From positions 58,094,001 to 58,158,000 of the forward strand of contig OZ241827.1 in NCBI GenBank assembly GCA_965202585.1: a DNA stretch of 64,000 nt, given 5' to 3'. This document shows positions 39,501 to 63,500 of this stretch, one piece after another (position 1 is the first letter of the stretch; each line of letters begins with the position of its first letter). The position numbers and the translations under genes were made by a program. The notes under the pieces are model-generated. The model had not been told where the DNA came from, ran no database searches, and saw only the letters and a list, made by a program, of their open reading frames with translations. Source of the DNA: Thalia democratica. Its lineage: Eukaryota.

Positions 39501-42500
39501 GTTACAAAAAAAAACAACGTTTTTATTATTTTAGATTTAAATAATTTTTTTGTATGAAAGTGCCTAAGTATAACTAAGTACAAAAGTTTGAACATTTTAG
39601 TATTTTGTTATTTACTTTAAAGTTTTTTTAAAGTTTAAATTTAAACATTTTAAAATTTAATTAAATTATTGATTTTTTATTACAACAGATTTTATAAGTA
39701 CCCAGAACAACACTACGAATACTCGAGCATACACACGTGAGTTGTTTCTCACATTTATTTTAACCGCTTGAGCATGCTACATCACTTAAAATTAAAAATA
39801 CAAAAAATAAACTACATACTGTTTAGTTTAATCATGTTATCTTTCCGCTTCGTGGTGCTAAAGACTCAATTTTGTAGCTGGAGGACGATCGAGAAGGGAG
39901 CTTGCAGCGTGAGTTGCGGGAACGGGACGCTGCAGAGGACGATCAGGTGCGTGGAGGAGAAGTACAACGGAGATGTGATCAGGATCCATGAGGACGAGTC
40001 GGAGTGCGGCAACTTCGTGAAGCCGGAAACTATTGAAGCGTGCAACACGTTCGAGTGCCCGAAGTGGATCGTTGGAAACTGGTCCGATGTAAGTTGATCG
40101 TTTTTTTTTTTGCAACAAAAATTTCTAAAGATAACAAAGCTTGAAAAAATTTCCAAATAAAACTCATTGAAAAAAGTTATCAGCTTAATATTATTTTCAA
40201 TACTAATTAAAAAATAGATTATTTTATAAGCAAAAAGTATTAATTTGTTACTTTAATTATACTCAATACAATAAACTTAAACAACCATAAAGCGTTTTTT
40301 ATTTACTTAAAAAAGTGGACAAATCACATTATTTTTACTTAACTTATTTACTTAAATGAACAGTGTAGTGTTAGTTGCGGTAGTGGAGTGCGAAATAGGT
40401 ACATCATATGCGACAACAGAGCGACTCCTACAGTAAATTGTGAAACAAGACGACAACCCAACACTGTGATGGAGTGCAACACAGTCTGCAAGAAGGGTTA
40501 GTAACTTCTATAATTTCGTAAAATTATGCTTTTTGAAGTATCTTTATATATTTGATGAGTCATAAACTATATTTAAATATTAGCTAGTCAGTTTTTTAAT
40601 GGCTTTTATGTTTCAAAAATATTAAATGTTTTAGTTTCAATGTTAAAAATAGTAGTTCAAAACACAGATTTTATAAAAGTAAACTTTAATTTAATTTAGA
40701 AAACGTTTTAGTAATTCAATTAACTGTAAGCAACAAAGCTTAATTGTTAACTTTGTTTAATGACGTATGCTTGCGGATGTAACTTTTGCTTAATTGAGTC
40801 GAAAATGTGATAAAACTTATTTTTCAACTTTGTTTTAGTGATACCTTATTGTGAGCTTAGTTGATGTATTATAAGTTTTTGAACATCACTAAAAGGTATA
40901 TTTGAAGATGATTTAAAACAACTTTTACTTTAGCAACTAGAGTGATTTTTTCTAGATAAGAACGCCAGTAAAAACTTGCGGAAAACAAAATCAAAGAAAA
41001 GGAAACAGAAAAAACCTTCAACAGTATTGAAGTTTACTCCAGTTGCCAAGTAAGTTTTCAAGCTACTTTAGTTATGCTAAATAAAAAAAACTTTAATAAC
41101 CTACTTTGATCGTAAATAATTCAAGCTAAATACTTTTAAGCTTGATTATTCTATAATTCAAAAACTTAACTAGTCTTTTTGTAAAACTCTTAATTTACAC
41201 TAATTCAATAAAGATAAACTTTATTTTGTATCAGAAACAAACTTTATCGAATTCCCTCAACTTAAGTCTTTTCTAACGAACAAACTTTCATAGTCTGAAA
41301 AACGCAGCAGCTGTTAAAATTTTTCAGACTAAAACCTAAACAGAGAATTGTTCTTTATGCAAAACCAAAACTTTATTATAAACATTTTTTCACAACCATT
41401 TTAGCAAAAGTATTTCTAACTTAAATACAAACAGATGGAAGGCGAGGGAGTGGAGCGCATGTTCGAAATCTTGCGGGATGGGAGGATTCAGGACGAGGAG
41501 GGTGGAATGCGTGGAGGAGGGGATCACTAAAGAGGAGGAATTGTACAAGAGCGAACCCAGGTGCAGGGGACCGGCTCCCGTTCACACCGAGGTATTTAAA
41601 GTAGAAATGACTAAAGCAAATAAAGTACTTTATAAATGTTTGTGATGTTGAAATCTAGTGCTGACTTTGTGTTAAAAACAAATTTAATTATCAAAAAATT
41701 AAGGGATAAAAATGCGCTTAAAAAACTTATAAAAAAAGATGGTACTTATAAGAATAAGTAATATCCTCAGTTAGAAACTTAATAATAATTTTAAATTATA
41801 ACGTTTAAATTAAAAAAAAAATTAAAGTTAGTTTAATCTTTTCTTAATACTAATTTATATTCTTCAAAATTTATTTTTAAGTACTTTTTTTACTCGTTTT
41901 AAAAATTTTGTAGGAGGATACATTTCCTTTTGTCTTTGTTTCATCTAATTTTGCTGATGTAAAACTGTTATCTGTTTTATTTTTTTTTTTAATTATAAAG
42001 CTTAATAAGTTTTTATACAATAAAAACCAGTTCTGAGCAATTCAAAACTTATAAAGCTTTAAAAAAACACATAAACTAAAGTTTTATTGAGGCAGTTTTT
42101 AAGTTTAAAAAGTACAAAGTATTTTAACTGATTTTATCAACTAGCTCAAACTAAGAAATAGCATGTAAACTAAATTTTAGGAAAGTCATGTTTAAACTTA
42201 AAAGCCACTAAGTATTTTGTTTGATTTTATCGAGTAAAATATCAGATAAACTTATAAACTTACCTCTGCACACACTAAAAGTTTTTTATGGAAAATTTAA
42301 TCTATTTCTGCAACAAACTGACAACAAAACATTTTATTGCGGCAAATTTTTTCCCATTTATAAACGGCATCATTAATAAGCTAAATTGAATTTTAAAAAT
42401 TATCCGAGGTTGATTATAGATTATCAGTTGCGATAAGAGCCGATACCCCAAATGTCGTGTTGTAGTTGGATTGTGAACTCTTGATTAAACAAACGGCAGT

Positions 42501-45500
42501 TGTAATGTTTGCTTCGGAGATTGTTGGCTTTGTAGTTTGTGTAAGGCCGGCATTTAAAAGAAGGTGATTTTACAAGCGTCACAAAGCCGAAAGGGGACTT
42601 CGCTCAAAACTATCAAATGTTTATTTTAAAGATAACTTTACTGCTAGCTAATGTCTAAATTTGACTGAATTACTGCTTTACTCGAAACTTTACTTGAAAA
42701 TTACTTTCATAGTGAAGAAAAAACTTTTATTAATTGTTAAGTTATTGTTTTTTATTTGTTTTATATCTAAACAATTCTTAAAATTTTTTTCAAAAAGAAA
42801 AATTCTACAATATTAATACTTGCAGAAATGCTTTTTGGGTTTGTGCCCCTTCGACACGCATCGGCGGGTGAACGAGGCGATGGGGTCGCCGATATCGGTT
42901 GTCAGGGTAATCGAGAAGGAGGTGGTGGTCGTCAAGGAGGAGTTTGTGTGGAGATTTGTCAAGTGGACAAGCTGCAGCGTCACTTGTGGATTTGGTGAGA
43001 ATAATAAATTCTCAAGTTTTAAATACACAGATTTATCTATATTTGTTCTAAAAATTTGCGGATATTTAAAAAGGTAGTAAACATATGACTATTGTTGTTT
43101 TATTACTGTATTATTTTATATTGTGTCTATGTACATTATCTACAACTTTAAAGTTGTTACTATATTCAGTTGTTGGTGTTTTGTAAAATGAAATAAGTAA
43201 AAAATTAAAATATTTTAGTATTATTTTCGTGCAAGCTACGCGTTTTGCTAGTTAAAATATTCATCAGTAATCTTTTGTAAGCTTTCACAGATTAAACATA
43301 CTTTATTATTTTAGATTGACCTAAAATTTAATTCTTTCCTAATTCTTATTAAATGCGAAAAAACTCTTTTCGGCACCAAATAGTTTTTTTTTTAATATTT
43401 CTGTCTGTGTTTTTTATAAAAAATCAATCACAACTGTTAATTTATAACAAATAAAAAGATAACAAGATGTAAAAGTATGACAACATGTGTGTATTTTTTA
43501 TAAACACAAATAAATTGGAATATTTTGATAAAGTAGTCGACAATAAGAAACTTTATGTATAAATTGTCAAAAAAAGGTTTAAGATTAATAATCCTAAGAT
43601 AAGAATTAATTAATAATATTTTTTTCTAATGTTAAAAAGTAATAAAAAAAGTATACAGGTAGGTATATTGTAAGTATATATACAGTAGTTAATTACTTGT
43701 GTTTATCAAAATTCAACTTCAAAAAGGGTAAATTAATTATACCTAAACAGTTCACACTTTTATTAATTAAGATTGATAAAAAATTAAAAAATTTTTTTTA
43801 AACAATCTCTTTTCAATATTTAAATGTGTAACATTGTTAACTTTTGTTTTTTAGATTTTTTTAGTTTAAAATAAAACAAGTGTTTTAACCACTTAAAATT
43901 AGCTTATGGTATAATGTTTACATTTTATATATTTGTTTAGTATATGAAATAACTAAGCAAAAAAAATTGTTTGATCTTGAGTTTATTTCAATCGTTAATC
44001 ATCAAATTATGTATATAACTAAACTATAATTTAATAAAATCGATGCGTAGCATACAGCTTAGCTTGTTAATTTTTATCACACATTAAAAAAGGATTTTGG
44101 AATATTAAACATTAATAGCTTAATTAGCCGCCATAAATTTACTTTTAAGTTTAAAATTGAAAAAATAATTAAAAACGATGATAAATTAGTTATATATTTT
44201 TATTGATGTTATATTTTGTTTTCTACTTAGTTAATTTCTACGTGTTTAGATAACCTTTAGCTTAGTAAGCTTTATAGCAGTTTTAAGTTACCTAGAAACT
44301 TTTCACTAATACTTATTTGATCAGAAATCCGTGTATAGCATTTTGCAACAAGTAAACACTTGTAACCTCTAAAACGTTTTACTAAAAAAATTTAATTTTG
44401 ATTACATTGCCAAAAGTTACTGTTTTAAGTTGTTTTAACAGAAAAAAAGTAACGCATTTTTTAAAAGTTTTATTTACTCTAAATATTTCTATCCTAAACA
44501 TACTTTTTTTTATTCTATAAAAAATATAGTTGTTTTTTTATTTAAGCTTATGATAGACGATAGTTTTTAAACTTTAATTTAGATATAAATATACTTTGCT
44601 ATTATGTAAATTTAAATGCACAATAAAGACTACTATAAGGCATTTAGATACTATTTTTACTTATAACGTAAAATAAAGTTTACTGCGCCATTTCGTGTAA
44701 AATAAGGCAAAAAGCCAGAAATTTTTCTAACAGCCGACAAATTATACAATTAGCACTTTTTCTGCACGCCATTACCTTTTGTCTGTACCCAACTTTGCGT
44801 TTCCAGACACCAAACTGTCCACTTTGGCGTTTGCACTTTAGCACAATTTCAGACAAACACTCCCCGGCAACGTGAAATAATAACCTTAGTTAAAGCGAGG
44901 GCTTAGAGCGGGCGAAAAGGGATTTGCAGATATTCAAAAACGTTTGTCGTTCGGACAAATTGGCGTTGTTGGCGGCATGAAGCGAGGCAATTACGAGCGG
45001 ATAATTCGATATTTTCGGCACAACTCGATACGCTGGCACCTGTTTGTTGTTGGGCCGGCACCTGCGAAAATACCTTTATCGTATCGGGTTGCAAACAAAT
45101 CGCGGCTTTGATCCGACTTTAAAAGGATGAAGGCCATAACCTGTTTTCATACCGTAAAATTATGCTAGTAATGACGATGAATTGACACTGTCAACACAAT
45201 TTTACTTGGACATTGAAGGTTTTATCAAAATTTACAGCATTATTAAAAGTTTTTGTTTGTAAACAATGAATTATGAAACTTTTAGTTTTTGCGAGCATTC
45301 ATAGGGCTGTAGAAAAAAAAATAGATATTTTATATGAAAATATTAGAGTTTGAAATAATGCTTAAGTTACATCTAACTGAAAAACAGCTTTATCAAAAAT
45401 AATAAAATTTCATTTATTGTATTTTCATAGGAATGTCCGTATCAATACCTTTCTGCTACGACAACCTCTCAAATCGCCTGGCAGCAGACAGCAGATGCGA

Positions 45501-48500
45501 CCGATCGAAACACCCCCTTCCAAAGCTAGCCACCTGCAAGAGGGACCCCTGTCCCCTTCTACTCAAGACTGAAAACGAGACCAGGTAACTTTTATTTGCT
45601 CTAACTATTTTGGTGGCGATTTTTCTATTTTGTGAAACAAAACTGCATGAGAAATGTTAGTAAGGTCTTCTACTTGAGCTTGTCAAAAAGAGAAAATAGG
45701 TAAAAATGACTTAATTCATTGTTGAAGTGTTCTGATGGGAACAAAAGGGCCGTGTAATTGGCCTGTTTTCACCACGCACTGCTTAAGTAACAGTATTCAG
45801 GTATCATGTATCACTCTTATCCTTACTGAAATTAAATTAGCAATCGTTACGATCAAACTAAGTCAAGTAAAACGCGATTGAATTGATAAAAGGCAAGGAA
45901 AAAACAACACAAAATTTATTTAAAAGTAACTCAAAACTTAAAAAGTGAGAACAAACCATGTGAAATCAAGTTGAAATACCTTTAGTTTGAAAAACTCGTT
46001 GGTATTTATCGAAATTTCAAACAAATATTGTATTCAGCTAAGTTTGTATATTGATGAAAAAAATGTAAAACGAAGCTTATAAAGACTATTGAACAAATAT
46101 TGCTAGAAAATTATATTAAGTACGCAATTTGTATTAGAAATTATTAATTTATAAGCTTGTTAAAATATAAGCGTTAATATGCCTGAGTACATCTCCTCTG
46201 ATCGGGACTTTTAAGTCTTATGATTGATGTTGTTGTGATCTTATCTCGCTTCTTTAGAGACTCTTATCGAGCACCTCTAATACGTAAGAAGCTGTCAACG
46301 CCAAGAGGAGTGCAAAGCTGATAAAATTCAATCACTCAAAACTTTTCCCAAACACCCTTTTGAAGTGTTGCACCTCAATGTATTCATGCCTTTGCCTCGA
46401 AACGATACCTTTCATGTAAGCAAATTAGATATCTTTTGTTCTGCAAACAGCAGGGATAAAGGGTTTTTTTTGAAACTACTTTAACTTGAGTAAGCTGATG
46501 AGATTTGAAAAGCTGCCAGTGATGTTCTGAAGGCGACCTAAAATACATTTAAAATTTATATTCAATTTTTTGCTGCTTTTCTGTTTATTTTGACACTTAA
46601 ATATTTTATATGTTAAATCAACTTTGAATTACGTTACAAATTATAATAGTTATAAACTATAATCTTTTTTTAAATCTTTAACAAGAGGCTTAATGTTGAA
46701 CTTTAAGCATTTCGATACAAAATATTCAATTAACAGAAATGTTTTTTAGTTGATTTAATAAAAATACTTGTAATAAAAATAACATAAAAGACACACTGTT
46801 ATTTTTAGTTATACTGTAGATAATTTGACAACTTAAACTTTTTACAACTTTTTAATAAAACAAAAAAAAATTAAAAAAGTTAAAACGCTAATCGTTCTAT
46901 AGTAAGTGCTTAATACTTTTATTTTATCATTTGAAATATTAAAGCAACGGACTTTAGTGTTATATTCGAACGACTTTCGTGTATTAACTACTTATTTAGT
47001 TTGATAACTTTTATATAAAACTAAGACAGCTATGTACATAGATTACTTCTAAAAACATTACACAGAAGTATTTTGTAAACAAAAGCTTCTTTATAGTTCA
47101 ACAAAACGACTAAAACTTTATGAAACTACATAAATTGTTTTAGACGAAAAGTTTGTAGAAAAATAACAGCATTTGTAGTACAGGTAAATAGCGAACATGA
47201 GATAACTTTCCATGTTAAGGAAAAAGGCTAGAACTTCGTTGCTTACAAATTATTTTGAGTATGTAAGGCTTTGCATAGGAATTTGTGTACGAGCAGAGTA
47301 AGACTAGAAAATGTTTGAGTAAAACAATTTTTTCTCTGCTTATAAGCTAAGAACTTGCATTTTTGTTTTTAAGTTTGTTTCAGAATGTGGTGGAATTTAG
47401 GGACTGTAACATGTTTTTAAAGTGCTGACAAAAATAATATTGTTTTAAAATTATTTTGTTAATTAAACCTTGGTTAATAAAGATTAGTTTAGAAACTTTC
47501 CTTATAACTACTTTAAGATGAATTTACATTAAACAAGTTGTCAAAAAAAGATAAAATCACAATACCAGTAAAAGTTTTTTATTAAGTTAGGTAGTTATCG
47601 GGCTTCTACTCTTTAAAAATTTTTAAAAACAGAAAGACAAAATAAATAAATTCAATAGTGTAATATGGTTTAGGTAGCTTTTTTAGTAAGTGCTAAATTT
47701 TTATCAACTTAGACTTTTTTTTACCTAGAATGACTCAAATTGTTATTTATGGTTTTAAGTATGTTGGACTACAGTTTAAAAGTAAATTAATTTACCTGTT
47801 TTGTATGCAAGCTTTACTTGCAATAAAACCTTTTTGTAAATCTTAGTATAACTTATAGCTTCACGTAAAAACTAAATAACTGCTGACACACCAATAGCTA
47901 TGACAGTGTACATTACACAATGTGAAAATTTGCACTTATTAAAACCGATCGCAAAGTAAGGTACACAAAAACAATTAATAAATTTTCCATTGTAGATTAA
48001 CGACTAGACGTCAATAAACAAAGAATTACATTATAGTCAGTTTTAATCTCATTAGCTTCCTGCTTTATCAAACCTATTAGTAAGAGTAACATAATTAAAA
48101 AATGCATATAAACTTGGACTCTGCCCAACTGGTTATTAATTAATTATCTAAAACAAAAATCACCATTTCAGCGATTAAAACCTAGTTGAATGTAAAAAAG
48201 TATACGAGCATGCTTATCAACAAGTTATGAGGCAGAGCTCCAGCAAAGTAGAGCACCGAGTAATTGTTCAAGTAGTCAGATGATATCAAAAAGTTGAAAA
48301 CAATGTCAGCAGTTAGAAGTAGCAGCAGACTTTTATTTTACAAATTTGTCATCGTTTTTGTCACATCTCTTGAATCGCGTCTCCACGGCAACATTATTGT
48401 CGCCGCCGTTTCTTGGCAACCGACCGGCGATTGTTCCACGGTCAACAAGCCGCAATCCATCGGCTCGGGGGTTGAAAGCGGGAATGCAGGTACAAGGCTT

Positions 48501-51500
48501 CCATTAGAAATTAGTTTCCCGCTTAATAATAAAAGGAGGTCTGTTGAACTGGTGAACGAGGCATCGCGTGAAGTCAGAGCTCAGTTAGTTTGTTGTTTTT
48601 TAAGATGAAAAATATATTTTGTTTGTATTAACTATTGTTTTTACTTTCAAAATACTTCTAAACAAGAAAAAAAAGTATGACCGAGTTGTAAATAATTTGA
48701 CGTTGCTTGAGTAAAATTATTCACAAAAAATATCTTTAATGGTGTTTCTGACTAGTTTTAATGAATATTTGAAAATTAAGTAACTTTTAAAACAAAAAAA
48801 AAACTGTTATTAAACTTATAGTTGAACTATATCATTAAAAAAGTATGTTTTTTTTTTGTTTATTTATTATTTAAAACTTACTTAGGTTGGTCGATTCAAA
48901 GAAAGTTTTGAATATAGACTTCTTTTCTAATATTTAAATAGAACAAATATGTTTAAGAAAAAATGGATAAACAAATTGCAACAAAAAAATAAAAAACAAA
49001 GAGCCTTTTTTTTTGTGATTAGAATACCAGAGCGAGCTTAAACTACAAACATTTACGAACATATAATCAAATGTAAATATTTGCATAAAAAACATTTGAA
49101 AGGGGGTTACTTGGCCTTCACACAGCGTTTCTTATGTGTTTTTACCTTTTGATCTGATCATTTAAAACTTAAACACTCGTCGATATCATCTATTAGCTTT
49201 GCACGGTAGAGTGTTATAATCAAATTAACACGTTCCTATAATTGACATCTATCAATTACAAAGTTTGGTTCAAAAATATCCAAAATAAAACGAACGGTTG
49301 AAAGTAACGCAAAATAAGATGTGGAAATTTTTGAGAGCTAAATTGTTGAGATAACTTCGTGGTTTTACATTAATGAGCATTTTAAATCGGTAGGACTTTT
49401 TATTGGTTATTTTAAATATTGAATACCTTTAGTTGCAGCAATTTTGCAAAAGAAAAAAGCTCCAATGTTTTGATGACGTCATATCTTATTTTGGGTAGTT
49501 TTCTTTTAAAAATTGTGCAAAAAAGTTACAAAAATACTTAGCGTTGATAAGTAAATTAAACAACTTTACATTTAAAAAATTTAAATAGTTTTCTTTTTAT
49601 TTCTATGCACGTGTTTGTATTTGTTTACAATAAAAAATCACATTAAAAGTGTGTTTTTTTATTGGCAGAGACACTTATTCTTGTGTTTACAAAAATAAAG
49701 CTCCAAAAACTAGCAGTACGACTTTTAATGAAGCCAGATTGTTCAATTTACTTTTCAGCGCGACGTATTTTTGTAACTTTTTTGTATGACTTTAAAAAGT
49801 AAACTACCCAAAATAAGATACGACGTCATCAAAATATTGGAGCCTTTTTTGCAAAACTACTGCAATTATACACATAAAAAAGTACCCGATATAGCTCGAT
49901 AGAAAATTACCCATAAAAAGATCTACCAATTTTAAACCTTCAAATATGCTTACGTAATCTATTTTTTCTGTAATTTTAAATTGTTTTCACTTTATTAATC
50001 ACAAACTTCATGCTTTTTCTTAATTATATTAATAATACAAAAATTATATAAAATTAATATTTGATGTTATAAAAATGAAAATAAATTTCAATTAATATTT
50101 TTATTATCAAATTGTGCAAGAGAATTTGTTTCCTAGGAAAACACTTTTAAAGTTAAAATTACATGGTTTGAAAACTTTGAAAAAATTTAATGTGAAAAAT
50201 GTTGTGTATGCTTAGTCATTAATGTACAAGCTTTTATAAATCAAACAAATTTCTCGTCACAAAGCAAAATTAGATTAGTACTATTTGTTTAGTTATAACT
50301 GTCATGTTAACAGTTTTTATTTGCATTGTGTCATTTAACAGTTCAAAAGGACTTGTATAAAAAAGCTAATATTACTTATGTTGTTAAGTAAAACTAATTG
50401 TAAACACTTTTGAAATTAATAAACAAAAAATTATAAAAAAAGCTAAAGATAAGCCTTAATTGTTACAATAAATTATGTAAAACTATATTTCAAATAGTTG
50501 TTGCAGAAAATTCACGCTGATAATAGACCCTAAATTAATTGAAGACTATGAATCATAGCTTAAAATTTGGTTTAAGATAGTATAACGTAATATGTTTTGT
50601 AATTTCTTGAATAAAACACTATAAAATAATTTTTTTAAAGGTAATCTTCTTTAGAAAAAATTTACTTAAGTTTACTGAAAGTTTTTAACTATAAAGTTTG
50701 TTAAAAAACATTATTTTGTTGTTTGCAAACAATATGTTTTTTTTGTAGTAAAGATCAAAGATAAATTTATCTCAACAAGTATTCTTTAAACGAAATAAAA
50801 ACTTTTGATAGTCATTTAAAAACCTTCCTTTGAAGTTTTTAAGAGTTGAAGTATTATTTTACCTAATAAAAGCAATGTTTATGAGATTAAACAACATCAT
50901 TTTACAACCCTAAACGAGTATTAATTGTGTTTGACAATAAAACATCGTTGGATAACAAAAGATTATGTAATGTGGTTGTGTAAGCTATTTCACTATATAA
51001 AGAAATGTTACTTTAACAATATAACTTGGTTTTCAAACTATTTAAAAGCTAAAAATTCATAGAGATCCTTTTAAACTAAGTATTATTATATTTTATTTAG
51101 AAAGCCAAGCATGCTTTTATTACTAGTAGTAATGCTATTTAAGCACTGTAGTTTATAATTCATTAAAGTTTATTGAATACTTTTAAAGTAAAAAATAATG
51201 TCGTAAGTTTTTTGAAATCAATTTTTATTAATGAACAACCAAGTATAAGAAGTATACAAAATAGCAGCAAAAAAAAAACTGTGAAAAGCTATGAACGTTT
51301 TTTTTAAATCAACTTTATCACGATTTTTTATTAAGAAGGTTTTGTATCGATATTAGCACTAAAGACCTTTGAAAACTTCAGAACATAACATGAAGTTACA
51401 AGTTAATAACGCTAAAAGCCCAAGCAAAAACAAAAATGATAATTTAAGGGTTTTAGTAATAACGCGAAAGTTTCAACTTGGTTATTAAATTTTGATGTTT

Positions 51501-54500
51501 TCAGAATTTGTTCGTCGGCACACCTTTAATTTGGCCCGGTGTCAGATCTTGTGAAAATTGTATTTATGTTGTTTTAAAACGACATTAATCCCATAACGCA
51601 TTGTGCTGCTAACACACTGAAGTTTTCGGCTAAACAACCTTGCATTTGTAAAAATATTTTTGTGTTTTCACGAGGCATTTAGATTTTTATTACGAGCATG
51701 AAAACCAGCTTTAATTAATAGAACTTATTTTTTTGATCAAAATCATATTGGTTCGGAAATTTCAAACTTAAATAGCAGGCATCATCATTACAATGCTAAC
51801 ATTATGAAAAGTTTATAGTAAAATATAAAAATACAGTAAAACAAAACTGATAAACAAGCGTCTTATTTGTGCAAAAAAAAAAAACCGAACAAAAGTCTCA
51901 ACTCTCCTAAAAATTTTAAAAAGTTACGTCATAGACCAACTCGTAGTAAGTTAAACGTGTTGCGGCAATAATACACACAAGTTCATATAAAAACTTACTG
52001 GTGGTCTTTTGTCATGAAAAAATAACGAGTTGCACTTCTGTGCCACTTCAACAATTTGTTGTACTACGACCACCCCGACACACAAAAACCTTTTTTCTTT
52101 TTTGTTTTTGTCGCAGGCTCTGTTGTAGCACAATAGTGCGATGGCTGCGCTGTGTGTTTACAGTAGCTACTCGACAAAAGACACAAGCTCGAATAATTTG
52201 TGTTCAGATTTTATTTAGTAGCTGCTTAGATCGGCTTAGGTTTTCAAAGTTTTTGGTAATTGGAAGTTAAAAGGTTTTTGAGGTATTTTTAAGTCAGTTA
52301 AAATTTAGATATTTTATTATTTTTGTTCTGTTCCAGGTAGGTTTCTAAGTTTATTTTACAAGTTATAAAAAAGGTAAAAAACAATTAAGCATTAATTTTA
52401 CAGTTTTAAGTATTGAAAGCTTTTCAATATTCCAAATGTTATAAATAATTAAAATTAATAGCTAGTTTATCTTGATAGTGAAGGGTTTGCTTTAAGTCAT
52501 GTTTTATAATACTTTATTCAGATTTATTTATTATTTAGTTATTAGATTAAATAACTTCAACTAGTGCTGTTTAAAATGATTAAAGTTTTTCTTTTTTTTT
52601 TGCATTTTGGAAACATTAAAAACTGAAATTTCTGAATAAAATCTATTTTCATACTTGATATACTAAAGTTATCAATTCAAAATGAAAGAAAAACTAAAAA
52701 AAAACGTATTCGAGTTCATTTTTTTAAATGTGAGTTCCTTTTAACTTAAGTTTACTGTAATTCCGATTTCAAAAATAAACTGTTATAAATATTATATAAA
52801 ATTATTATAAATTATTATTATAAAAAGATACCGCACTAACACTTAGTGTTAAGAATATTTCTAATACTGATAACGATAAATCAACGTGCAAATATTTTAC
52901 AAACAATTGAATTTCAATTATTTTTTAGAAGAACTAAAAATCACTGATTTGCATAATTTTATTATTATTTAAAATTAAATCGTCAGTAACGACGCTCTTA
53001 TCCGTTCAAACTCAGCAACAAAGTGTCATCCATTAAGTTAATACAAATACAGTTTGTTTATCACTAAACTGTCACGCGCAGGATACTGTTTATGAACGCC
53101 AGTATTACAACTGCATTGTGGCATATAAGGTCGATTTCGGTTGTATAGGAAACGGTATGATGTATTTATACCGATTTGATCCATCACTCCAGTGCAACGA
53201 ATTAGCGCGGTTTAATCAACCGACGAGACGCTGTTCTGACACCACCGAGAGCAAATCCCCACCACTTTGTGTTTGCGCCGGTGACCGCTCATGCGGATCG
53301 ACGTGAGAGTTGTTGATTTCACAACTCGATGCGGTCGGCTGCTCTCGCTAACATTTAAATGCGCTCTCCGGTTCTGAATGTTTTGAAACTGCTGTGCAAA
53401 AACGGCCAGGTGAAAAACTGAATAAGCCGGATTATTAGTGATGAACTTTGTCTTTATTACACTGATGTTACTACGTTTTAATTGTAGTTCTTTGCATAAA
53501 GTATATAACAGTTATTTAAAACTATTTACAATATTAAACTTAAATCATAATTGAGACAAAATATACAATTTTAATTTATTTTTTCTCCATAACTTTTTTA
53601 AACTCTTTGTGCTTTCTGAAAAGTTCTTTAATGTTGGCGCTTATGTTAAAATTACAAATTGTATGACGTTTCCGAAAGTATAAATATAGCTTCTTTCATG
53701 AGCAGAGCATTTACGTTCTACACATAAAACTGGTATTGTAGGTAAATTTTATTTACATATTGAAAAGCGTATTCAACAAACGCTTCATGAACATATAAAT
53801 GCGACCGGTCGAATTATCCAAACAAAAATAAAAGGCACATTTACGACACCAAATGCGCACTTTCCTAACCAAACAAAACGCGTTTCCGGCATTAAGCCCA
53901 GTCAAGACGGCTTCGCTGTTCAAACAGCCCTGTGCTTGTGATTCTACGCAGAATTAACCGTGTACAAAAAAAAAACGTGAAAAATTTTAAAAGTTTTAAT
54001 TGTATGCAGTGAAGTGGTGTAGTTCGGAAGTAGGTAAACAAAAATAAGAGATTGTGGAGAATTAGAACGAATGTGTGTAAATTTTTATTAAATACATTTG
54101 TTCTTCGCCATTCAACTCGTGTTTGCTTTGGATTTTCAACACAGAAAAAAGTGAAAGCGTTTGCAACGTTTTTAAACAGCAATAACTACGTTTTGTGTAT
54201 CGTTTGAACGTTCAGTTGTCGCAGACTTTGTTAGAATAGCAAGGTATAAAAAGTTGTGAGAATATGTTGCAGAATTATTTTCTGCCGAATTTTTTTTGTA
54301 AAAATTTCAAATCAGTCGCAGTGCTCAAAACTATTTAATTATTGCGCTTGATTAAACTGAATTAGTGTTAAAAGATGTTAAAATAGTACAGTAGATATTT
54401 TGTTGCAAAAATTAAAAAAATAGAAAACTTTAATAGTACTTTTTGAAGGTACTTTGTTCTAAAAAAAAACTGTTTAGTATAATGTTAATTTTTTCGATTG

Positions 54501-57500
54501 TTCATATTTAAGAAACAACATTTTCATTGTTTTATGTGATATTTCAGTTGTTTTTGTTTCCAGGATATAAAAGAAAGATTTAAAAGACTTCATCGGAGAA
54601 TAATATATTTTTAGTAACTACGTTTTTCTTTTAAGTTTTTCAATCAAACTTAAAGCTTGAGGTTTAAAAGTAGGTTTTTACCTTTGAACCAGACTTAAGC
54701 TGAAACAATTTTATTTAAAGCTGAAGTTTATGACAGACAGATTTAGTAACACATTGTATTCGTCAGTGTTTTTGTTTTCTGTCAACATTACAATCTCGTG
54801 TGAAAAGTTTGAAATCTAAATATAAATACCTTCTGGTTAAAAAAACTTATTCATATTTCATACTATTTTCAACTGACCTTTTCAAAGCTTTGTGGCGATT
54901 TAAATTAAAAACTCTAGAAACATTCTTCAATGACAACAGCATGAATATAGTGATGTAAGCTGTTTACACGAGACTAGAAACAATTAAATTTTATTTTGAA
55001 TGAATTTATAAAATTGCATAGACACGAAAGCACATTCATTATAATGTCAATTCAATTTCAAGTAGTGGTGAATTTTATACAACTTTGATCTAAGCTTTCT
55101 GCAGAAAAAGTTGCAGTCAGTCTATATAAGGATTGTTAAACAAAGAAGCTGTAGTGTATTAAAATCAAAAATATTATTTACACTAAATACTGTTAAGTTT
55201 GTTATTAACAAGGTCAGAGAAATGTTTTTGAAGTTAAAACTAGTTTGGTTTGTTTTGGTTTGCAATTTAACTTCGTGTTCTATATATCATGGTATTTTTT
55301 TTGTTTATGATTTTTTTAAACTTTTAAATCGTGATAAAAAACAGCTTAGTACTTTTAAACTTTTTTGGAGCAAGTATATATTTTTAGAAAGTGTTCTATA
55401 ACTACTACTTTGCATAGAAATAACTTATTTCATTTTTTTTAAATTGAAGTTTAAGTTGAAAATAAAACAAACTAACTTCACTTATATTTAGCAGTTTCGG
55501 AATGTTATGTATAAAACAAACATAATCTTTTTAAGTACTTATTATTTTTACCTAGCAGTTTTTTTAGTTGCTATTGGACCCTGTCAAAGTATCCCAATTA
55601 GGTAAGTACTTTTAAGAAACAATTCTAAACAGTTTTTAGTATTGTCATAACTATTTAACTTTAAAATAATTATGTTGTACCTAATAAAAACTTGATTGCT
55701 ACAAGGTTTATATAGTGTCAAATGAAAACTTTTTACTGTGATATCATTATAGCATCATGTTATAAATGAGGTAAGTTATACGCTTAACATAAAATTTTAA
55801 TGTAATTAGAAATGCTAAAATACAATAACAACCAATAAAGTACTACATGAGAAAAAAACACACTTCACAACTTGTTTATATAGAGGATTAATTTCAGTAA
55901 ACTTTTAAAATGTTTACTTCGCATAAACTCAATAAACTTTAAAATACTTATTATAAAGTTAATGTTTGCATAAGCTACAAACGAGCCGATAGTGTAATAA
56001 AGCATTTAATAATTATAAAACAAGTTTACCTGTTCAAAGTAATTTTTGATGTCACTTCGTTTTGCGGTTTTTTCATACTTAAGCTGAATTTAAACAAAAA
56101 AATCTGATTTGGTATGTTTGTATGAAATAAGTTTATTTGTTCTTATCTAAACATAACTAAAAAATTTCATTAAAACTTATTTAGAAAATTATAAAAAATA
56201 AACTAAATCGTACAGTTTGAATTTTTGTTAGTTATTATACTAGTGTCATTAAAAAAGCTGAATGTATCTATGTTTATAATTAAAACATAGCCTTTTTAGT
56301 AACATTTTTGATAAGTAAAAATAAAAACTAAGTTGATTTAAAATGATTTTAGTTTTTTCAATAGGCTCTCCTTATAATAACTTTAAAATCATAGCATAAA
56401 CTAAAAATATATCTAAAAATTATCCAATAATTTTTCAGATGGGAAGTAGGTCAGTACGGTTCGTGCTCGAAAATGTGCGGCAGAGGGATGAGAAAAAGAT
56501 CTGTCACGTGCAAGTTCATGCCTGAAAATTCCACTCACCACGTCACCAACGATGACGTCATGCCTGAAATCATGTGCCCCAACCCGAAACCTCAGTCGGT
56601 TGAACCTTGCGGGTTTGCCACCTGTCCCCCTGTCTGGATGAAGTCTGGTCTCGGGAAGGTAAGTTTTAAAAAGCCTATTGACATACCAAATATATTCTTG
56701 ATAGTAAGATTTTTTTTCTTAGATTATTAAACCAATTTAAGCGAGATCTGAACATTTGACAAGGTAAAAAGACTAAGACCATTCATTGAGCTTAGCCTAG
56801 TAATTGAGCCTACTCATCTATTTTGAGAATTTTTCATTGAAAAAAAGTAATACTTTTTAGTGTTCTGAGCAATGTGGCAACGGGTTTCGTGAATTTTCGT
56901 TCCTGTGCAAGCAAAGAACAGGAACAGGCAAATTGATTCAGGTGCCTTCAAAATATTGTTCCAAGAGCAAACCGTATCGGTTGACAAGGAGAAAGTGCAA
57001 AGTTAAAGTGTGCGAACCGAAATTCACTGCGGAAGATTGGAGTGAAGTATATTTATTTTTCAATTTATTAAGTATCTTGCCTGTAATTGACATAAATAGC
57101 AACAACTAAAACAGTTTTAAAATAGTTTTATATAAAAATGTTACTACTGGGCATTTATTACTATAACTCATAAATAACATTATGTTTGTTAATTTACTTT
57201 TTTAATGACTTTCAAAAACTCCAAAATGCACAGCTGAAATCTTTTTTTAGTGCAAAGGCGACTGCACAAAGTTACGAAAAGGTTGGCAAACAAGAAAAGT
57301 TGTCTGCATGTACATGAGAAACGGAAATTGGCACAAAATTAGTGCGAAATCGATTTACTGCAAAAACCTGAAAGCACTTCCGGCGAAAAGGAGTTGCTCA
57401 CTGCACAGGAAATGTATGTCCAGCTTGGGTGAGTCAACTATGTGTCTAATTAAATATAATTCATTACCTTTTGAAGTCTTCTACGTCTTAGTAATTTGTA

Positions 57501-60500
57501 TACTGTTCTAATTAAGTATTTTACAGCTTCGAATAAAGAAGGGCAAACGACCATCCAAAGAAGGCCCAACCCGACCAAGATCAACGGATCGCTGAGAGTA
57601 TTCGTGCAAAAATCGGCCAGAAATACCCCTCTACAGCTGACCCTCCCGCTTAAGGCCTTCGTCATCCCTGGAACAACCGTAATCGCCAAGTGCAGCTTCA
57701 AAAAGTGAGTTTTAATGCAAACAATAAACACCGTCACGCACAAGGTCAATGCGCTACAAAACAAAGTTTGTTTATCGGCAAATGGGAGAGAACGATGAAG
57801 GCAATTAGCTTTGATTATCTGCCGCTTTGTTTGCTCATAGCTCGATTTGATGGCAAGTGGGCAAACAAGGTGACATCAGTCAGAGGAAATTTCGCGTCCT
57901 GTTTGCTCAAAAACTTTAGACGGTGGCCTAGTTTTACATTAAAAAATAAACATATATTTGCAGTTAACTTTTGCTATTTTGACTTCAAACAATCACAGAT
58001 AGTTTGGCGCGCTATATCGAGCAATGCAGTGCAAATTTTGTGATGTTTCGTTAATGGGCGATATTTTCGGACATCAGTCTTCCTTTTGGAGCTAATTAAG
58101 GCTATTTTTACATTGCGGCGGTCCTAAATGTTATTTCTTCCAGCTAATTAGTTTTATTTTTACTCAGCGGTGCGCCATCAAAACACGCGTGGTTTGTCAA
58201 CAAGCGGAGGGTGAAGAGCAGGCGGGGGAAGGTGATGGTGACGAAGGGGGGCAACCTGAAGATGAGCAAGATCAGAATGAGGAGGAGGCAGGTGGTGAAG
58301 TGCCAGGGAGGACAGGGCAGGAGCAGGCTGCTCGTTCTCATCAACAAAAGTTTATTTTTTTTTATGTTAAGTAATCCTAATCACCAATAGCAAAATGTTA
58401 ATCAACTTAATTTAAGTTTATGACTGTTTTGCGTTAAGTACTTTATTTTTAAAATAAATTATTCTTAAATTCGAAAGTTTGTTACTATACAATATGTTAC
58501 TTCAAAAGTTTAAACTGTTTTAATACCGATAAGATGCTGTATAATAAGTGAAAAATAAAATTAGCTTGAAAACTCAGTAATTAATTAAATTAAAGATTTT
58601 GAAATAACAAATTTTGACTTTTGAGACATCAGAAATCTTTTCTCAATGCAACTTTTTGTGTTTATAAATTACGTCACTTGTACTTTTGTGTTCAATTAAA
58701 ATAAACAGCAATTTCTCAAACTTAATTTTTTAATCAACAACGTGATTTATATGCTGATAAATGATGTACAATTTTTTAATAAGAACTGCATTATAAATTA
58801 AAAATTAAGGAGCTTTATAAAGCGGGTTCATAAAAAACGTTTTAATTCTCTCTTTATGCACTTAACATGGTTTGAATGAGCTTTTGAATTACGTAACCCT
58901 TTGTAGACTAATAAAGCTTTAAAAATTAACTTTATTTGTAACACAAGTTCAACAAAAGATTTGAAAAATTTATGGTTGCAAAATTTTTCACATTCCGTAA
59001 AATTTTTATTTTAAATAAAAACTGTATAGTATTTTTCTAAGCTATTAATAATAGAAATTAATAATAAAGCTTAGCATTTTAAAAGTTTGCAGTAGTCCAA
59101 AAGCAAATACTAGTGTCGCTTTACGTATGACAGCTTAACATTGCATGACAACGCGTGTAAGAACACGAAAAGGAACTAATTAAAAATTTTAAAGATTAAC
59201 TTCGTATCTAATTAACCTTTAGGAGCTGCCAGCGGATCACCTCATAAAGGTTTAGTGCAAGTCAAAGAGAACCATTTGCAAGAAGGGGGTCAAGCTTTTC
59301 AACAATCCATCACCAAGTACAGCGATAGAAAAGTTTGTCACATTTTACGTTTACAAAATTTACATACAAACTTAAAAAGCTTCATTGAATTATTAAACAT
59401 TTCCATCAAAATACTAATAAAATATTTTAATTTAATTTTAAAATTTATTAGGTATTTTTTATTTTGAAAGTTTGTAACAACACGACGGAATAAGTTTAAA
59501 TATCTGTTCAGTAAATTCTTAGCATACGAGCGACTTCCATTGTACAAGTTAATTGTATTAAAATTCCAAGTAACACACAACTTCGCGTTTCAACTTTTAA
59601 CATTTGCAGCATCTGAAGCTCGCAGCTGGAACTAAAGCTGTGAACAAGAAGGTAATTAGAAAAAAACCTCACATAGTCAACGACTACAAAGTCGTCCAGC
59701 TACAAGATATTGTGCCTGCTAAAACTGACTTTTTAGGTTATTTAAGTAAATATGCCATTAGAATTTTTAGACTTTTAAAAGTTATAAAGTTTTTTGTTTA
59801 TACTTTTGAAATGATTTACTTTCTGACGTCCCAATAAGTTTGGTAAAATCTGAAAAAAAAAATTCAAGTTTCTCTCAGTTTCATTAAACACATTTAACAA
59901 GACATGCATTTTACTTTAATTCTGTTTCTTAAATTAAAATTTAATTTAGGCTACAGAGAAAGAAAACACCTTCCGTTAGACTCGAAGAAATCCACTGTGG
60001 TTGTCACGACAACGCCTCCCCCTACCGACGAAAACGGGGTGAAAAAGGCGCCATCTATCCATGTTGCACCGACTATCGACCCCCTTCAGTACAGAGATGA
60101 CGTCATAGTCAACGTCGGAGGATCGGTGGTGGTCGTTGGGTCGCGACGGGTGACCATTTTGTGCGAAGTTACAGGGGAATACCCTATTGAGGTGAAATGG
60201 ATAAAAGACGGGCAAGAAATTACAAATAATGACAGGTTTGATTTATTAGGTAAAAACTATTTTTCTATTCTTATTTACACTGTTTGAAATGGGTGCACAA
60301 CTTGTCAATTTCTGATAATTCAAACTTCGACATCTGAAGTTCTTATAACTTGTAGATTTTTGATTTATACATTTTAGTTAATGCTTTTTTTATTGTTGTA
60401 ATGTAATCAATAAGACCTACATGCACATTTTGATTTGTTTTAAATTATTTTATTTTTGAGAGAGGGCTAGAAGCAGTTTTAGAGTTTACTAAAGCATGTT

Positions 60501-63500
60501 TGTTTTCATTACTTTATTTTTATCCCTTAACAATTATTCAATTTGTTTACAACTATAATTTTATCAATTAGAGCTATTGTAACTAAATAAGTCTTTTTTT
60601 AACTTAAAATACTTTTTGAGGTTATGGTCTCTTACATCTTTTTGAAAAACTAGCGTTGTCGAAGTTTGAACAGTAATGTAGCCCCTTGAAATAGGTTCTA
60701 ATTTATAAAAATTCATAGTTAAACACATAAAGAAAGTAATATATCTTAAAACAGAATGATCAAGCTCGGTGATGGATCCCTGAGAATTTTCAACCCCAAA
60801 ACATCAGACGCTGGTAACTACGTTTGCATGGCAACCAATCAGTGGGGAAACGACAGCCGAATGGTTTCATTGTCTGTCACCAACAAACCAACAGTTGTGT
60901 CCACGACCAGTGATGTTGACGATTTTGTGTCTATGGACTTGACAGTGACAGTTGGGTCGCATGTCAGGGCAAGATTAGGGGCCCGCGTTGTTATCAGGTG
61001 CCCAACTAGAGGTTAGTAAAGTGAATTATTAATTTTTAATTTTTAAGACTTTTCACTTTTTTATTTCAAAGTTATACTCATAACTTTCTTTTTTTTAATG
61101 TATAGTACATGTTTTTAAACATAAAAATGCTAAAATTTACACTAACTTAAAGCTTTCTGATTAAACTAAACCTCATAACTCAAATCATACTTTCACGTAA
61201 ATAAATTACGTCTGAAAACTTGCAAGATTTAAAAATTAATTCAAAGCAATACAAAACTTAAGTCTGACCGTTAAAAAAATTCCGCCAGTTTATCTTTTAT
61301 AAAAAATGATGCAAGTTGTATTATGTTACGAGTTTTCATTTTGTACATTATGTCGAAAAATAATGAAAATTTCAACCAGAGCAGCTGCTTTTGTAGTTTA
61401 AAATTAAATTAATATCTAACTTGTACATTAAATTTTTAATAGCATTATGTTTTCATCAGTGATGTTTTGTTAAATTTATACAGAGTAGAAACATTGATTA
61501 ATTTCAAAGTTTGTTGAAGGTCTAAAAGACATTTCATGGCAAGTTTCATGTATTATTAAAAATAAACATTACAGGCTCACCAGAACCATTTGTTCAATGG
61601 AACAAAGACGTCAACGGTCTTCAAAGAAACTCGCAAACTTTAATCGACAATTCTTTGGAAATATTTCCCACCACTTTGGCTGATACGGGACATTTCAGTT
61701 GCTTAGCAACAAACCCTTTTGGTAGCTCTTACCAAGCAACCATACTAGAAATTTTCGGTGAGTATAAATTTTAAATGCCTTAAAACTTGTAACTGTTTAG
61801 AAATATTTAAAATCACTGTAAAGTAAAACCATTATTAAGTATAAGTTTTTATTAGTTTCCCAATCAAAACTGAAACTAATTTATTTTCTAAAAAGAAATT
61901 ATTTAGAGCTTTAATTTTGAATAGCTACATCTAATTACAGTTCTACTAAAAAAAATATTTGTCAGAAATTAAACCGTAATTGGATATGAATTAAGTTTTT
62001 ATGACTTAAAAATTCTCTCTCACTTTTATTTTACTAGTTTCAATTATATAGTTATGTTATAAAGAGCACGTAATGTACGCTTAAATAAAAAATAGAATCT
62101 CTTATATATCTAGAGTATTTCATCTCTTTTAGTACTGTTAAAGTTAAAGTTCATTTAAATACTTTTAAGTTTTAGTAATTTTTCAAAAAAATAATTAAAG
62201 TTTTCTTCAAATTTTTTAAAATAAAATATACAGATCCGCCTCATATTACAAATGATGGAGTAGTTTTAAACTCAAACGAAATGAATGGACTTCCAGAACT
62301 TTTATTAACCGATTATAGTAGTCCAATTTACAGAGTTAAAGCGAACACTACTGTAATGATGGGTAAGTTTTTTTATTGACGAAACTTATTAAACAAATAA
62401 TAAAGATAAATAATTTAGTTAATGACACATAAAGGTTGTCCATTAACTGGGTATCCGGAACTAAGAATAGAATGGATGTTCAAAGGAAGTGCTATAGAAA
62501 CAACAAACAGTTCGACAAAATACAGAATGATGCACAACAACAAAGTTCTTTCAATCAACAATTTCAACAACGTCTCAGTTGGCGATTACTCTTGCAAGGG
62601 AACAAACACAGCAGGATCGGCAGATGCTAGTCTTCAACTGAAAATTACAAGTAATTTTACTTTTAAGCTTCATATTTTTGAAGCTATATCTACTGTATTT
62701 TAAGGTATTTTTTACTATCATTTTACGTAAACAAACTTTTTTTTGATTTTAATTTTTCTTGATACTGTTAAACATTCGTGGTATGCTTTATACCGTTAAT
62801 ATTACTTTTCATAATAACTGACAAACATACATATTGTTTGTTACATTAAAAGTTTTTGAAAAAGCTTTATAAAACAAAAAGTATGAAGTTTTTGATTGAA
62901 AAATTAAAGTTTCATAAAGAATACTAAAGCCTCAAAACTGCCTTGCACTCAATTTATTATTTGTTTTCAGTATACAAGTACCGAAAGGAGGGGTTGACGG
63001 AATGCAGTGCAAAGTGCGGGAACACGGGAACCATCACTGACAAGCTGGTGTGCATAGAAGACGGAGTGAGGACGGTGGACGATTGGTACTGCAAAGGAGT
63101 GGCCAAGCCGCAAGTTGAAACCCGGCCCTGCAACAGAAAAGACTGTCAGCCACAGTTGGTACTTTTTTAACTTAATTTTAACAACATACAAACAAGTACA
63201 TTACAAACAAATATTTTATTTTTTGTTCTACAAACAATATAAAAACAAGTTTTATTTATGTCTAGAAAAAAATATTTAATAAACATGCGGAGTACGTATA
63301 AAATGACGTGCGATTTCTTTATGCCTTTATAAATACTGAACTATAAAAACATTTATGAAAAAAAATTGAAGTTAGAAAAATAATCATAGCATTTTGGAAA
63401 TTTTTTAGGCGAATTTAGGTCATTTAAATTCTAACCTAGATTAGGCGGGTAGAGTTCAAACATGTTATTTAAAAATTTTACAGGAAATAATTGGTCTTTA

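Follow-up and report, generated by a model that had tools for sequence, protein, structure and literature searches.

A probable short-form first coding exon in intron 17 of an eight-copy, punctin-type ADAMTS-like gene family

The window analyzed here, C2:58094001-58158000 (64,000 nucleotides, nt), carries an ADAMTS-like gene of punctin-type architecture that belongs to an eight-copy family. The exons upstream of exon 18 encode thrombospondin type 1 repeats (TSRs) 1-6 and an ADAMTS Cys-rich module, and further TSRs and immunoglobulin (Ig) domains follow downstream. Intron 17 of this gene very probably contains an alternative first coding exon at 48303-48583, which is spliced directly to exon 18 and would open a short form of the protein. 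A first-pass annotation of the window had placed a start exon at the same ATG, but ended it at 48489 and carried it to exon 18 through a 34-nt adaptor exon. The features needed for the following argument are listed below; a slash in a donor motif marks the exon boundary.

45430-45584, + strand: exon 17 of the long form, second half of TSR6, phase 2, donor CAG/GTAACT, with RNA contigs over 45430-45556
47975-48302, + strand: transcribed leader and candidate internal promoter region, just 5' of the start codon and covered by colinear RNA contigs
48303-48583, + strand: alternative first exon, coding part, 281 nt (93 codons plus 2 bases), phase 2, ending EVRA(Q)
48490-48495, + strand: proposed donor CAG/GTACAA, phase 1, inside the exon, read through in four contigs of four runs
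48584-48589, + strand: RNA-used donor TCA/GTTAGT, where the loose ends of RNA contigs equal the start of exon 18
55568-55601, + strand: 34-nt AG..GT segment, proposed as an adaptor exon, a use that is unsupported
56439-56658, + strand: exon 18, a complete TSP1_ADAMTS repeat (TSR7; PF19030, E 1.1e-10), common acceptor of exon 17 and the alternative first exon

Extent and splicing of the intronic first exon

A search of sequencing runs with the segment 48200-48560 returned four marine metatranscriptome runs (three samples, one study) and several organism-labelled runs of unknown library type. Contigs of runs X1, X3, X4, and X5, representing three marine metatranscriptome samples and one organism-labelled run from two studies, were placed on 45300-51299 and cover 48276-48583 without a gap. 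Position 48489/48490 is crossed unspliced in each of the four runs (X1 record 8, 48398-48580; X3 record 9, 48394-48565; X4 record 22, 48472-48583; X5 record 28, 48450-48580), so these contigs do not show the predicted junction from 48489 to 55568, and no loose end falls at 48489 among those listed for them. Where the contigs do leave the genomic sequence, they enter exon 18. The loose letters after 48580 in X1 and X5 read CCA and then ATGGGAAATAGGTCAGTACGG... or ATGGGAAATAGG..., and those after 48583 in X4 read ATGGGAAATAGGTCAGTA, in each case the start of exon 18; CCA is the paralogue version of the TCA found at 48581-48583 in the window. Run X5 holds spliced RNA, in that its contigs stop at 45584 and go on with ATGGGAAATAGGTCAGTACGGTTCGTGC, again the start of exon 18. 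After 45584, three loose ends carry exon 18 sequence, and one that precedes 45430 carries the last letters of exon 16. Loose ends at 45584, 48580, and 48583 all run into ATGGGAA.., and the long join (45584 to exon 18) and the short join (48583 to exon 18) coexist in X5.

As the contigs reach 48583 and pass from there into exon 18, the end of the exon lies at 48583, its donor is TCA/GTTAGT, and its splicing partner is exon 18. The extent of the exon, its donor, and its direct in-frame junction are established for members of the eight-copy family. A length of 281 nt leaves the exon in phase 2, the same phase as exon 17, so the direct splice is in frame and an adaptor is unnecessary. The joined product reads ..ASREVRAQ-WE(V/I)GQYGSC (..EVRAQ-WEVGQYGSC in the window copy). 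The join of exon 17 to exon 18 at 56439 is likewise in frame, and the RNA of X5 bears out the clean phase-2 splice that had been described for it. The genomic sequence is consistent with this extent: the reading frame around the ATG is open from 48276 to 48605, the GTTAGT donor is identical in 10 of 10 sequences (8 genomic copies and 2 metagenome contigs), and similarity among paralogues drops from 0.95 to 0.78 at donor 48584, a sharp end of conservation at about 48583 and not at 48489. The G+C content is 49% in 48303-48489 and 27.5% in the surrounding intron, which is a hint of a real exon.

The status of 48303-48583 as a first coding exon is well supported, since an in-frame TAG at 48273-48275, upstream of the ATG at 48303, makes read-through from an upstream coding exon impossible. 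An internal cassette fed from exon 17 was rejected on account of this TAG and because the sole nearby acceptor-like AG (48278-79) gives an immediate TGA.

Set against these results, the first-pass annotation was accurate as to letters and mistaken as to splicing. The ATG at 48303, the phase-1 CAG/GTACAA at 48489/48490, and the 34-nt AG..GT segment at 55568-55601 are as described, and the translation of 187 nt, 34 nt, and exon 18 is reproduced exactly as quoted. The ATG exon, too, is transcribed in the gene family, has a basic-hydrophobic N-terminus, and lies in frame to the TSR7 exon; its end had to be moved from 48489 to 48583. The proposed donor is unsupported, as contigs of all four runs cross it unspliced and the donor in use is the phase-2 site at 48584. 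The adaptor exon is unsupported as well, as the junctions from 45584 and from 48583 both skip it and go straight to exon 18. The 34-nt segment has no part in the observed transcripts. It begins 7,079 nt downstream of 48489, beyond the 45300-51299 span on which RNA contigs were placed. The open frame contains 22 GT sites, of which 48539 and 48584 are already in phase 2 and require no adaptor; once a phase-1 donor had been chosen, a repair exon had to be found. The lesson for annotation is that the correct model is 281 nt joined directly, and that a hand-built chain of 187 nt and 34 nt was convincing yet wrong.

The ATG, length, and phase of the first exon are kept in 8 of 8 copies, and the AG, the GT, and the 34-nt length of the downstream segment in all seven aligned copies. 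The segment has an identity of 0.959 (top 6% of the 34-nt windows in the intron) and lies within a 175-nt island, 55450-55625, of 0.92-0.99 pairwise identity. However, its five substitutions favour no frame, and a profile of the whole intron reveals about a dozen islands of equal conservation, after which paralogue conservation was dropped as support for a 34-nt exon. As to the splice sites, which had been called strong, the donor is a perfect TAG/GTAAGT, and the acceptor is preceded by two further AGs at distances of 9 and 12 nt. A bridging mini-exon of like quality occurs in about 17% of shuffled introns per entry phase in a crude enumeration, so the segment is not beyond chance.

We consider it very unlikely that the phase-1 donor 48490, the 34-nt exon (55568-55601), and exon 18 are joined in a minor isoform. 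Such a join would be in frame, and CAG/GTACA together with about 20 flanking bases is invariant among the copies and is shared by the divergent homologue L037, where 23 nt around the motif are perfectly kept and similarity fades about 20 nt past the site; seven loose ends lie beyond those listed, and contigs drop rare variants. The conserved CAG/GTACAA is, however, within coding sequence, its crude donor score is just 3 of 6 (equal to that of the real donor 48584), and it is read through in four of four runs with no loose end among those listed. Both observed junctions into exon 18 bypass the 34-nt segment, and the extra acceptor AGs, the frequency of chance bridging exons, and the dozen equally conserved islands speak against the isoform as well. 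Exact junction patterns searched in JGI metagenome contigs gave no match to the proposed adaptor junction and none to the RNA-proven junction either, so this blank is uninformative on the adaptor. From exon 18, contig L038 (1,732 nt) extends upstream by just about 530 nt and so does not include the segment.

A different role for the segment follows from its frame. Since both RNA-supported upstream exons are in phase 2, inclusion of the 34 nt ends translation in TAG, whether entered from exon 17 or from the alternative first exon. The segment could then be a cassette exon with a stop-carrying ("poison") or truncating role, a reading with its perfect donor and its position in a conserved island, like the flanks of regulated exons, in its favour. 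To this we likewise give little credence: the TAG belongs to the donor consensus and its conservation is therefore not independent, and the island is one among many. The island (55450-55630) folds no better than shuffles (z = -0.29), and searches against Rfam found no credible RNA family in intron 17. The broader proposal, that segment and island together form a regulated micro-exon common to the seven full-length-type copies, acting either as an adaptor that gives a third N-terminal variant or as a stop-carrying switch that shuts off long and short isoforms, is in our judgment unlikely.

Leader, gene copies, and coding status

The direct splice having been fixed at the 3' end of the exon, its 5' side is described by the leader contigs. 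Colinear RNA contigs lie at 47865-48145, 47994-48145, and 48156-48312 in X5 and at 47979-48138 in X1; the leader contigs contain no upstream splice, and colinearity extends at least 440 nt upstream. The only loose end in the leader, 18 letters ahead of 48156, is identical to what the paralogues have at this place, which identifies it as divergence and not as a splice. Transcripts of the short form follow the genome without a break up to 48583, beginning at about 48156 at the latest and probably already at about 47865-47990; the phase-2 donor TCA/GTTAGT at 48584 is joined straight to exon 18 at 56439, and translation would begin at ATG 48303. We infer, and do not read directly from the RNA, a separate promoter and transcription start of the short form, because contigs cannot mark where transcription starts. 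The block 47975-48180 is a candidate promoter or enhancer of this form: it is 85% identical in L037, in which the coding sequence is 71% and the proximal leader about 50% identical, and it contains several TAAT/ATTA cores (TTATTAATTAATT, TAATCTCATTAG). A TATAAA at about 48108 was dropped as a promoter element, as it is not kept in L037. The leader also contains two small upstream open reading frames (ORFs), one from ATG 48228 (18 codons, stop TGA 48282-48284) and one from ATG 48280 (5 codons), and ATGAGGCAGAGC of the region 48228-48297 is kept in L001, L002, and L037. Translation may be under the control of these ORFs, or its main start may be situated beyond them on the 3' side.

The assembly contains eight copies of the 671-nt region that surrounds the exon (91-93% identity): seven occupy the interval 57.68-58.15 Mb of the same chromosome, on either strand, and the eighth is found on contig C761. 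For the tandem copies of the gene the identity is 91-97%. The unit of exon 17, alternative exon, 34-nt region, and exon 18 likewise occurs eight times at 83-99% identity, 55-106 kb apart and on both strands, and the distances between exon 17, the 34-nt region, and exon 18 are maintained from copy to copy. This arrangement reflects amplification of the entire ADAMTS-like gene, both in tandem and in inverted orientation. Two extra copies of exon 18, at C2:57865199-57865418 (+) and 57896805-57897024 (-) (loci L021 and L022), are 96-99% identical; the sequence upstream of them is unrelated, with no homologue of exon 17, the alternative exon, or the 34-nt segment. In copy c3 (L011, C2:57827384-57827659) TCA is changed to TAA at codon 2 in an otherwise intact exon, and the short form may have been lost in this copy.

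Several features of the exon argue that it is coding. The ATG, the 281-nt length, the phase, and GTTAGT are kept in 8 of 8 genomic copies and in L001, and the ORF is intact in seven of the eight, the exception being c3 with its TAA, as well as in the two metagenome contigs. In L002, which retains ATG, phase, and donor, an in-frame insertion of 6 nt gives a 287-nt exon. A more distant relative, L037 (P0005), was found by an exhaustive profile-free search; its ORF is open and its peptide has 64% amino acid identity over residues 7-71. The indels in its coding sequence measure 3, 6, and 3 nt, whereas those in its leader are of arbitrary length, and a phase-2 GT (AAA/GTTGGC) at the aligned donor position gives a 257-nt exon. 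In the N-terminus, two basic residues precede the hydrophobic core FVIVFV(T/I)SL (Kyte-Doolittle mean 2.8-3.4 for the 9-residue core), and YKFVIVFV is identical in nearly all sequences compared. Other conserved islands of the intron lose their ORFs across copies; the alternative first exon keeps its own. Protein searches detected no similarity of the first-exon peptide outside close relatives: with this peptide, exon 18, and the cluster listings, they returned only short marine-metagenome genomic contigs that read into introns. These matches are unspliced genomic sequence and have no bearing on the junctions.

A number of observations weigh against reading the exon as the translated start of a short form made by the window copy. 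The RNA contigs are 90-99% identical to the window and mostly carry the letters of the other seven copies; C at 48442, A at 48458, A at 48460, and A at 56446 are examples, where the window copy has T, C, T, and G, respectively. No junction contig in the four runs has the window copy's own combination of letters. The aligned L037 donor, GTTGGC, is weak, and L037 matches 48490-48583 at 38% as against 37% in the intron. Among the young copies pN/pS (nonsynonymous over synonymous differences) is about 0.67, the same as in one wrong frame, and variable sites are evenly spread over the codon positions (16/20/20), from which the peptide appears weakly constrained among these copies. To these we add the inability of contigs to mark the transcription start and the ATGs at 48228 and 48280 in the leader.

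The first of these points bears on which copy is expressed. The contigs represent at least two paralogue types, and because most of them have the letters of other copies, they prove the structure for the family and not the expression of the window copy. The window copy could be silent, with all RNA coming from paralogues and the structure merely inherited; we take this to be possible but, on balance, unlikely. At 48442, 48458, and 48460 the entire contig depth in every run consists of paralogue letters, and the window copy is an outlier at about ten positions of the exon. However, at 48364-48393 part of the X5 depth, about 10 of 51, has window-type letters that are absent from the other genomic copies. 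The ATG, ORF, donor, and acceptor of the window copy are intact, and the sequenced individuals differ from the assembled one. Expression of exactly the window copy is presumed from that of its family.

The remaining points bear on translation. The intronic transcript could be real but not productively translated, a promoter-associated or regulatory RNA that retains its ORF among young paralogues, for which the pN/pS value, the flat codon-position pattern, the upstream ATGs, the stop at codon 2 of c3, and an upstream non-coding block better conserved than the coding sequence in L037 might be cited. We regard this as improbable given that splicing brings the exon into frame with a long ORF, encoding TSR and Ig domains, on its downstream side, that the coding-sequence indels of L037 and L002 are multiples of three and the leader indels are not, that the phase-2 donor position is kept at 64% amino acid identity, and that the hydrophobic core YKFVIVFV is nearly invariant. 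An alternative first coding exon joined directly to exon 18 is the reading that we prefer.

Domain architecture and likeness to Punctin

The short protein would begin with a signal-peptide-like sequence and about 65 poorly constrained residues and would go on to TSR7-9, a charged linker, Ig domains of the I-set type, and additional TSRs; this product may be secreted. It would lack TSR1-6 and the ADAMTS Cys-rich module, as the first-pass annotation had proposed, since the corresponding Pfam matches and CSxxCGxG positions lie upstream of exon 18. The domains of the gene are as follows.

30682, 37677, 39903, 40364, 41460, 42973: six CSxxCGxG-type TSRs upstream of exon 18
34106-34330: PF19236 (ADAMTS_CR_3), E 7.9e-6, above the cut-off
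39741-40094, 40343-40498, 41382-41642, 56440-56658, 62928-63167: PF19030 matches
59898-60284, 60750-61013, 61526-61771, 62419-62700: PF07679 (I-set) matches

The gene thus has an N-terminal TSR1 (CSxxCGxG at 30682) followed by an ADAMTS Cys-rich module, and it combines an ADAMTS-type TSP1 array with I-set Ig domains; the order downstream of exon 17 is TSR7-9, a charged stretch, four I-set matches, and more TSRs. The number of domains given in the first-pass annotation is thereby confirmed. The ADAMTS spacer (PF05986) has 13 matches in the genome and none in C2:57.68-58.16 Mb, in an exon-by-exon search that a split or divergent spacer could escape, and exon-wise Pfam searches of 35809-36108 found nothing relevant. 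For PLAC (PF08686) the genome yields 10 matches, the best with E 1.3e-8, but C2 57.6-58.2 Mb contains none of them, the 3' end of the gene lying beyond the window. Given that the cluster has no PLAC or spacer match, we file the gene as ADAMTS-like with punctin-type architecture. On domain order, its arrangement of TSR1, Cys-rich module, TSR array, Ig domains, and TSRs is ADAMTSL1/3- or punctin-like. Loci with both PLAC and ADAMTS-spacer matches are found at C2:21.278-21.286 Mb, C1:25.82-25.88 Mb (three copies), C6:54.63 Mb, and C1:68.49-68.53 Mb. These would be more canonical ADAMTS/ADAMTSL genes, and any of them might be the true ADAMTSL1/3 orthologue.

In Caenorhabditis elegans, the forms of Punctin sort cholinergic from GABAergic postsynaptic sites, and to our knowledge the long/short Punctin design has been functionally worked out in C. 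elegans only. The long and short isoforms of MADD-4/Punctin arise there by alternative promoter usage (10.1101/2024.02.14.580278; PMC13142758), the short form having an internal first exon and the shared C-terminal TSR and Ig part without the Cys-rich and spacer module (PMC13142758; 10.1101/2024.02.14.580278). The published description of Punctin includes PLAC, and ADAMTSL1/3 are named as its orthologues (PMC13142758). Like MADD-4L/MADD-4B (PunctinL/PunctinS), the gene described here is one ADAMTS-like gene with two forms, the short one starting from an internal first exon. It differs from C. elegans MADD-4 in that additional TSRs come after its several Ig domains, PLAC has no match in the cluster, the gene exists as eight tandem copies, and the first-exon peptide has no recognizable counterpart outside close relatives; the likeness consists of gene layout and RNA joins. 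With vertebrate ADAMTSL1 (punctin-1) and ADAMTSL3 (punctin-2) it shares TSR1 and Cys-rich module, TSR array, I-set repeats, and further TSRs, but PF05986 and PF08686, both found at other loci of the genome, have no match in the cluster. The known short punctin-1 is a C-terminal truncation and not an N-terminal one.

The two-isoform logic that the first-pass annotation had drawn from C. elegans therefore stands as a layout like that of MADD-4L/MADD-4B with RNA joins in the family, while the structure of 187 nt and 34 nt offered for it falls. The layout matches, and Punctin kinship and a synaptic role of the family are putative. What the data add is the same long/short gene layout, with RNA support in the gene family, outside C. 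elegans. If the animal is a tunicate, this layout would be either old or easily re-invented in ADAMTS-like genes, and on the chordate side the family would serve as a system for studying whether each isoform labels its own synapses or its own matrices.

Other features of intron 17

Two further kinds of sequence were observed in intron 17, for which the RNA contig comparison ends at 51299, islands beyond that position lying outside its span. The first is a stretch of about 550 bp at 49380-49930 that is present in the window copy alone (pairwise identity of 0.13 in the seven-copy alignment) and at which RNA contigs have long unrelated loose ends; it is probably a young repeat insertion. A mir-2063-like hairpin at 49440-49514 is weak, with 32 bits against a gathering score of 100.

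The second is a set of non-coding islands that are as similar among paralogues as the exons are (0.90-0.99 pairwise identity), at 51930-52180, 52980-53380, and 53780-53930, with more of the same class at 50830-50980, 49130-49280, 47180-47280, and 46230-46380. The ORFs 51950-52267 and 53037-53303, which lie in the best-conserved islands, were rejected as hidden exons because most copies have stops in those frames. The islands could be enhancers or gene-conversion tracts.

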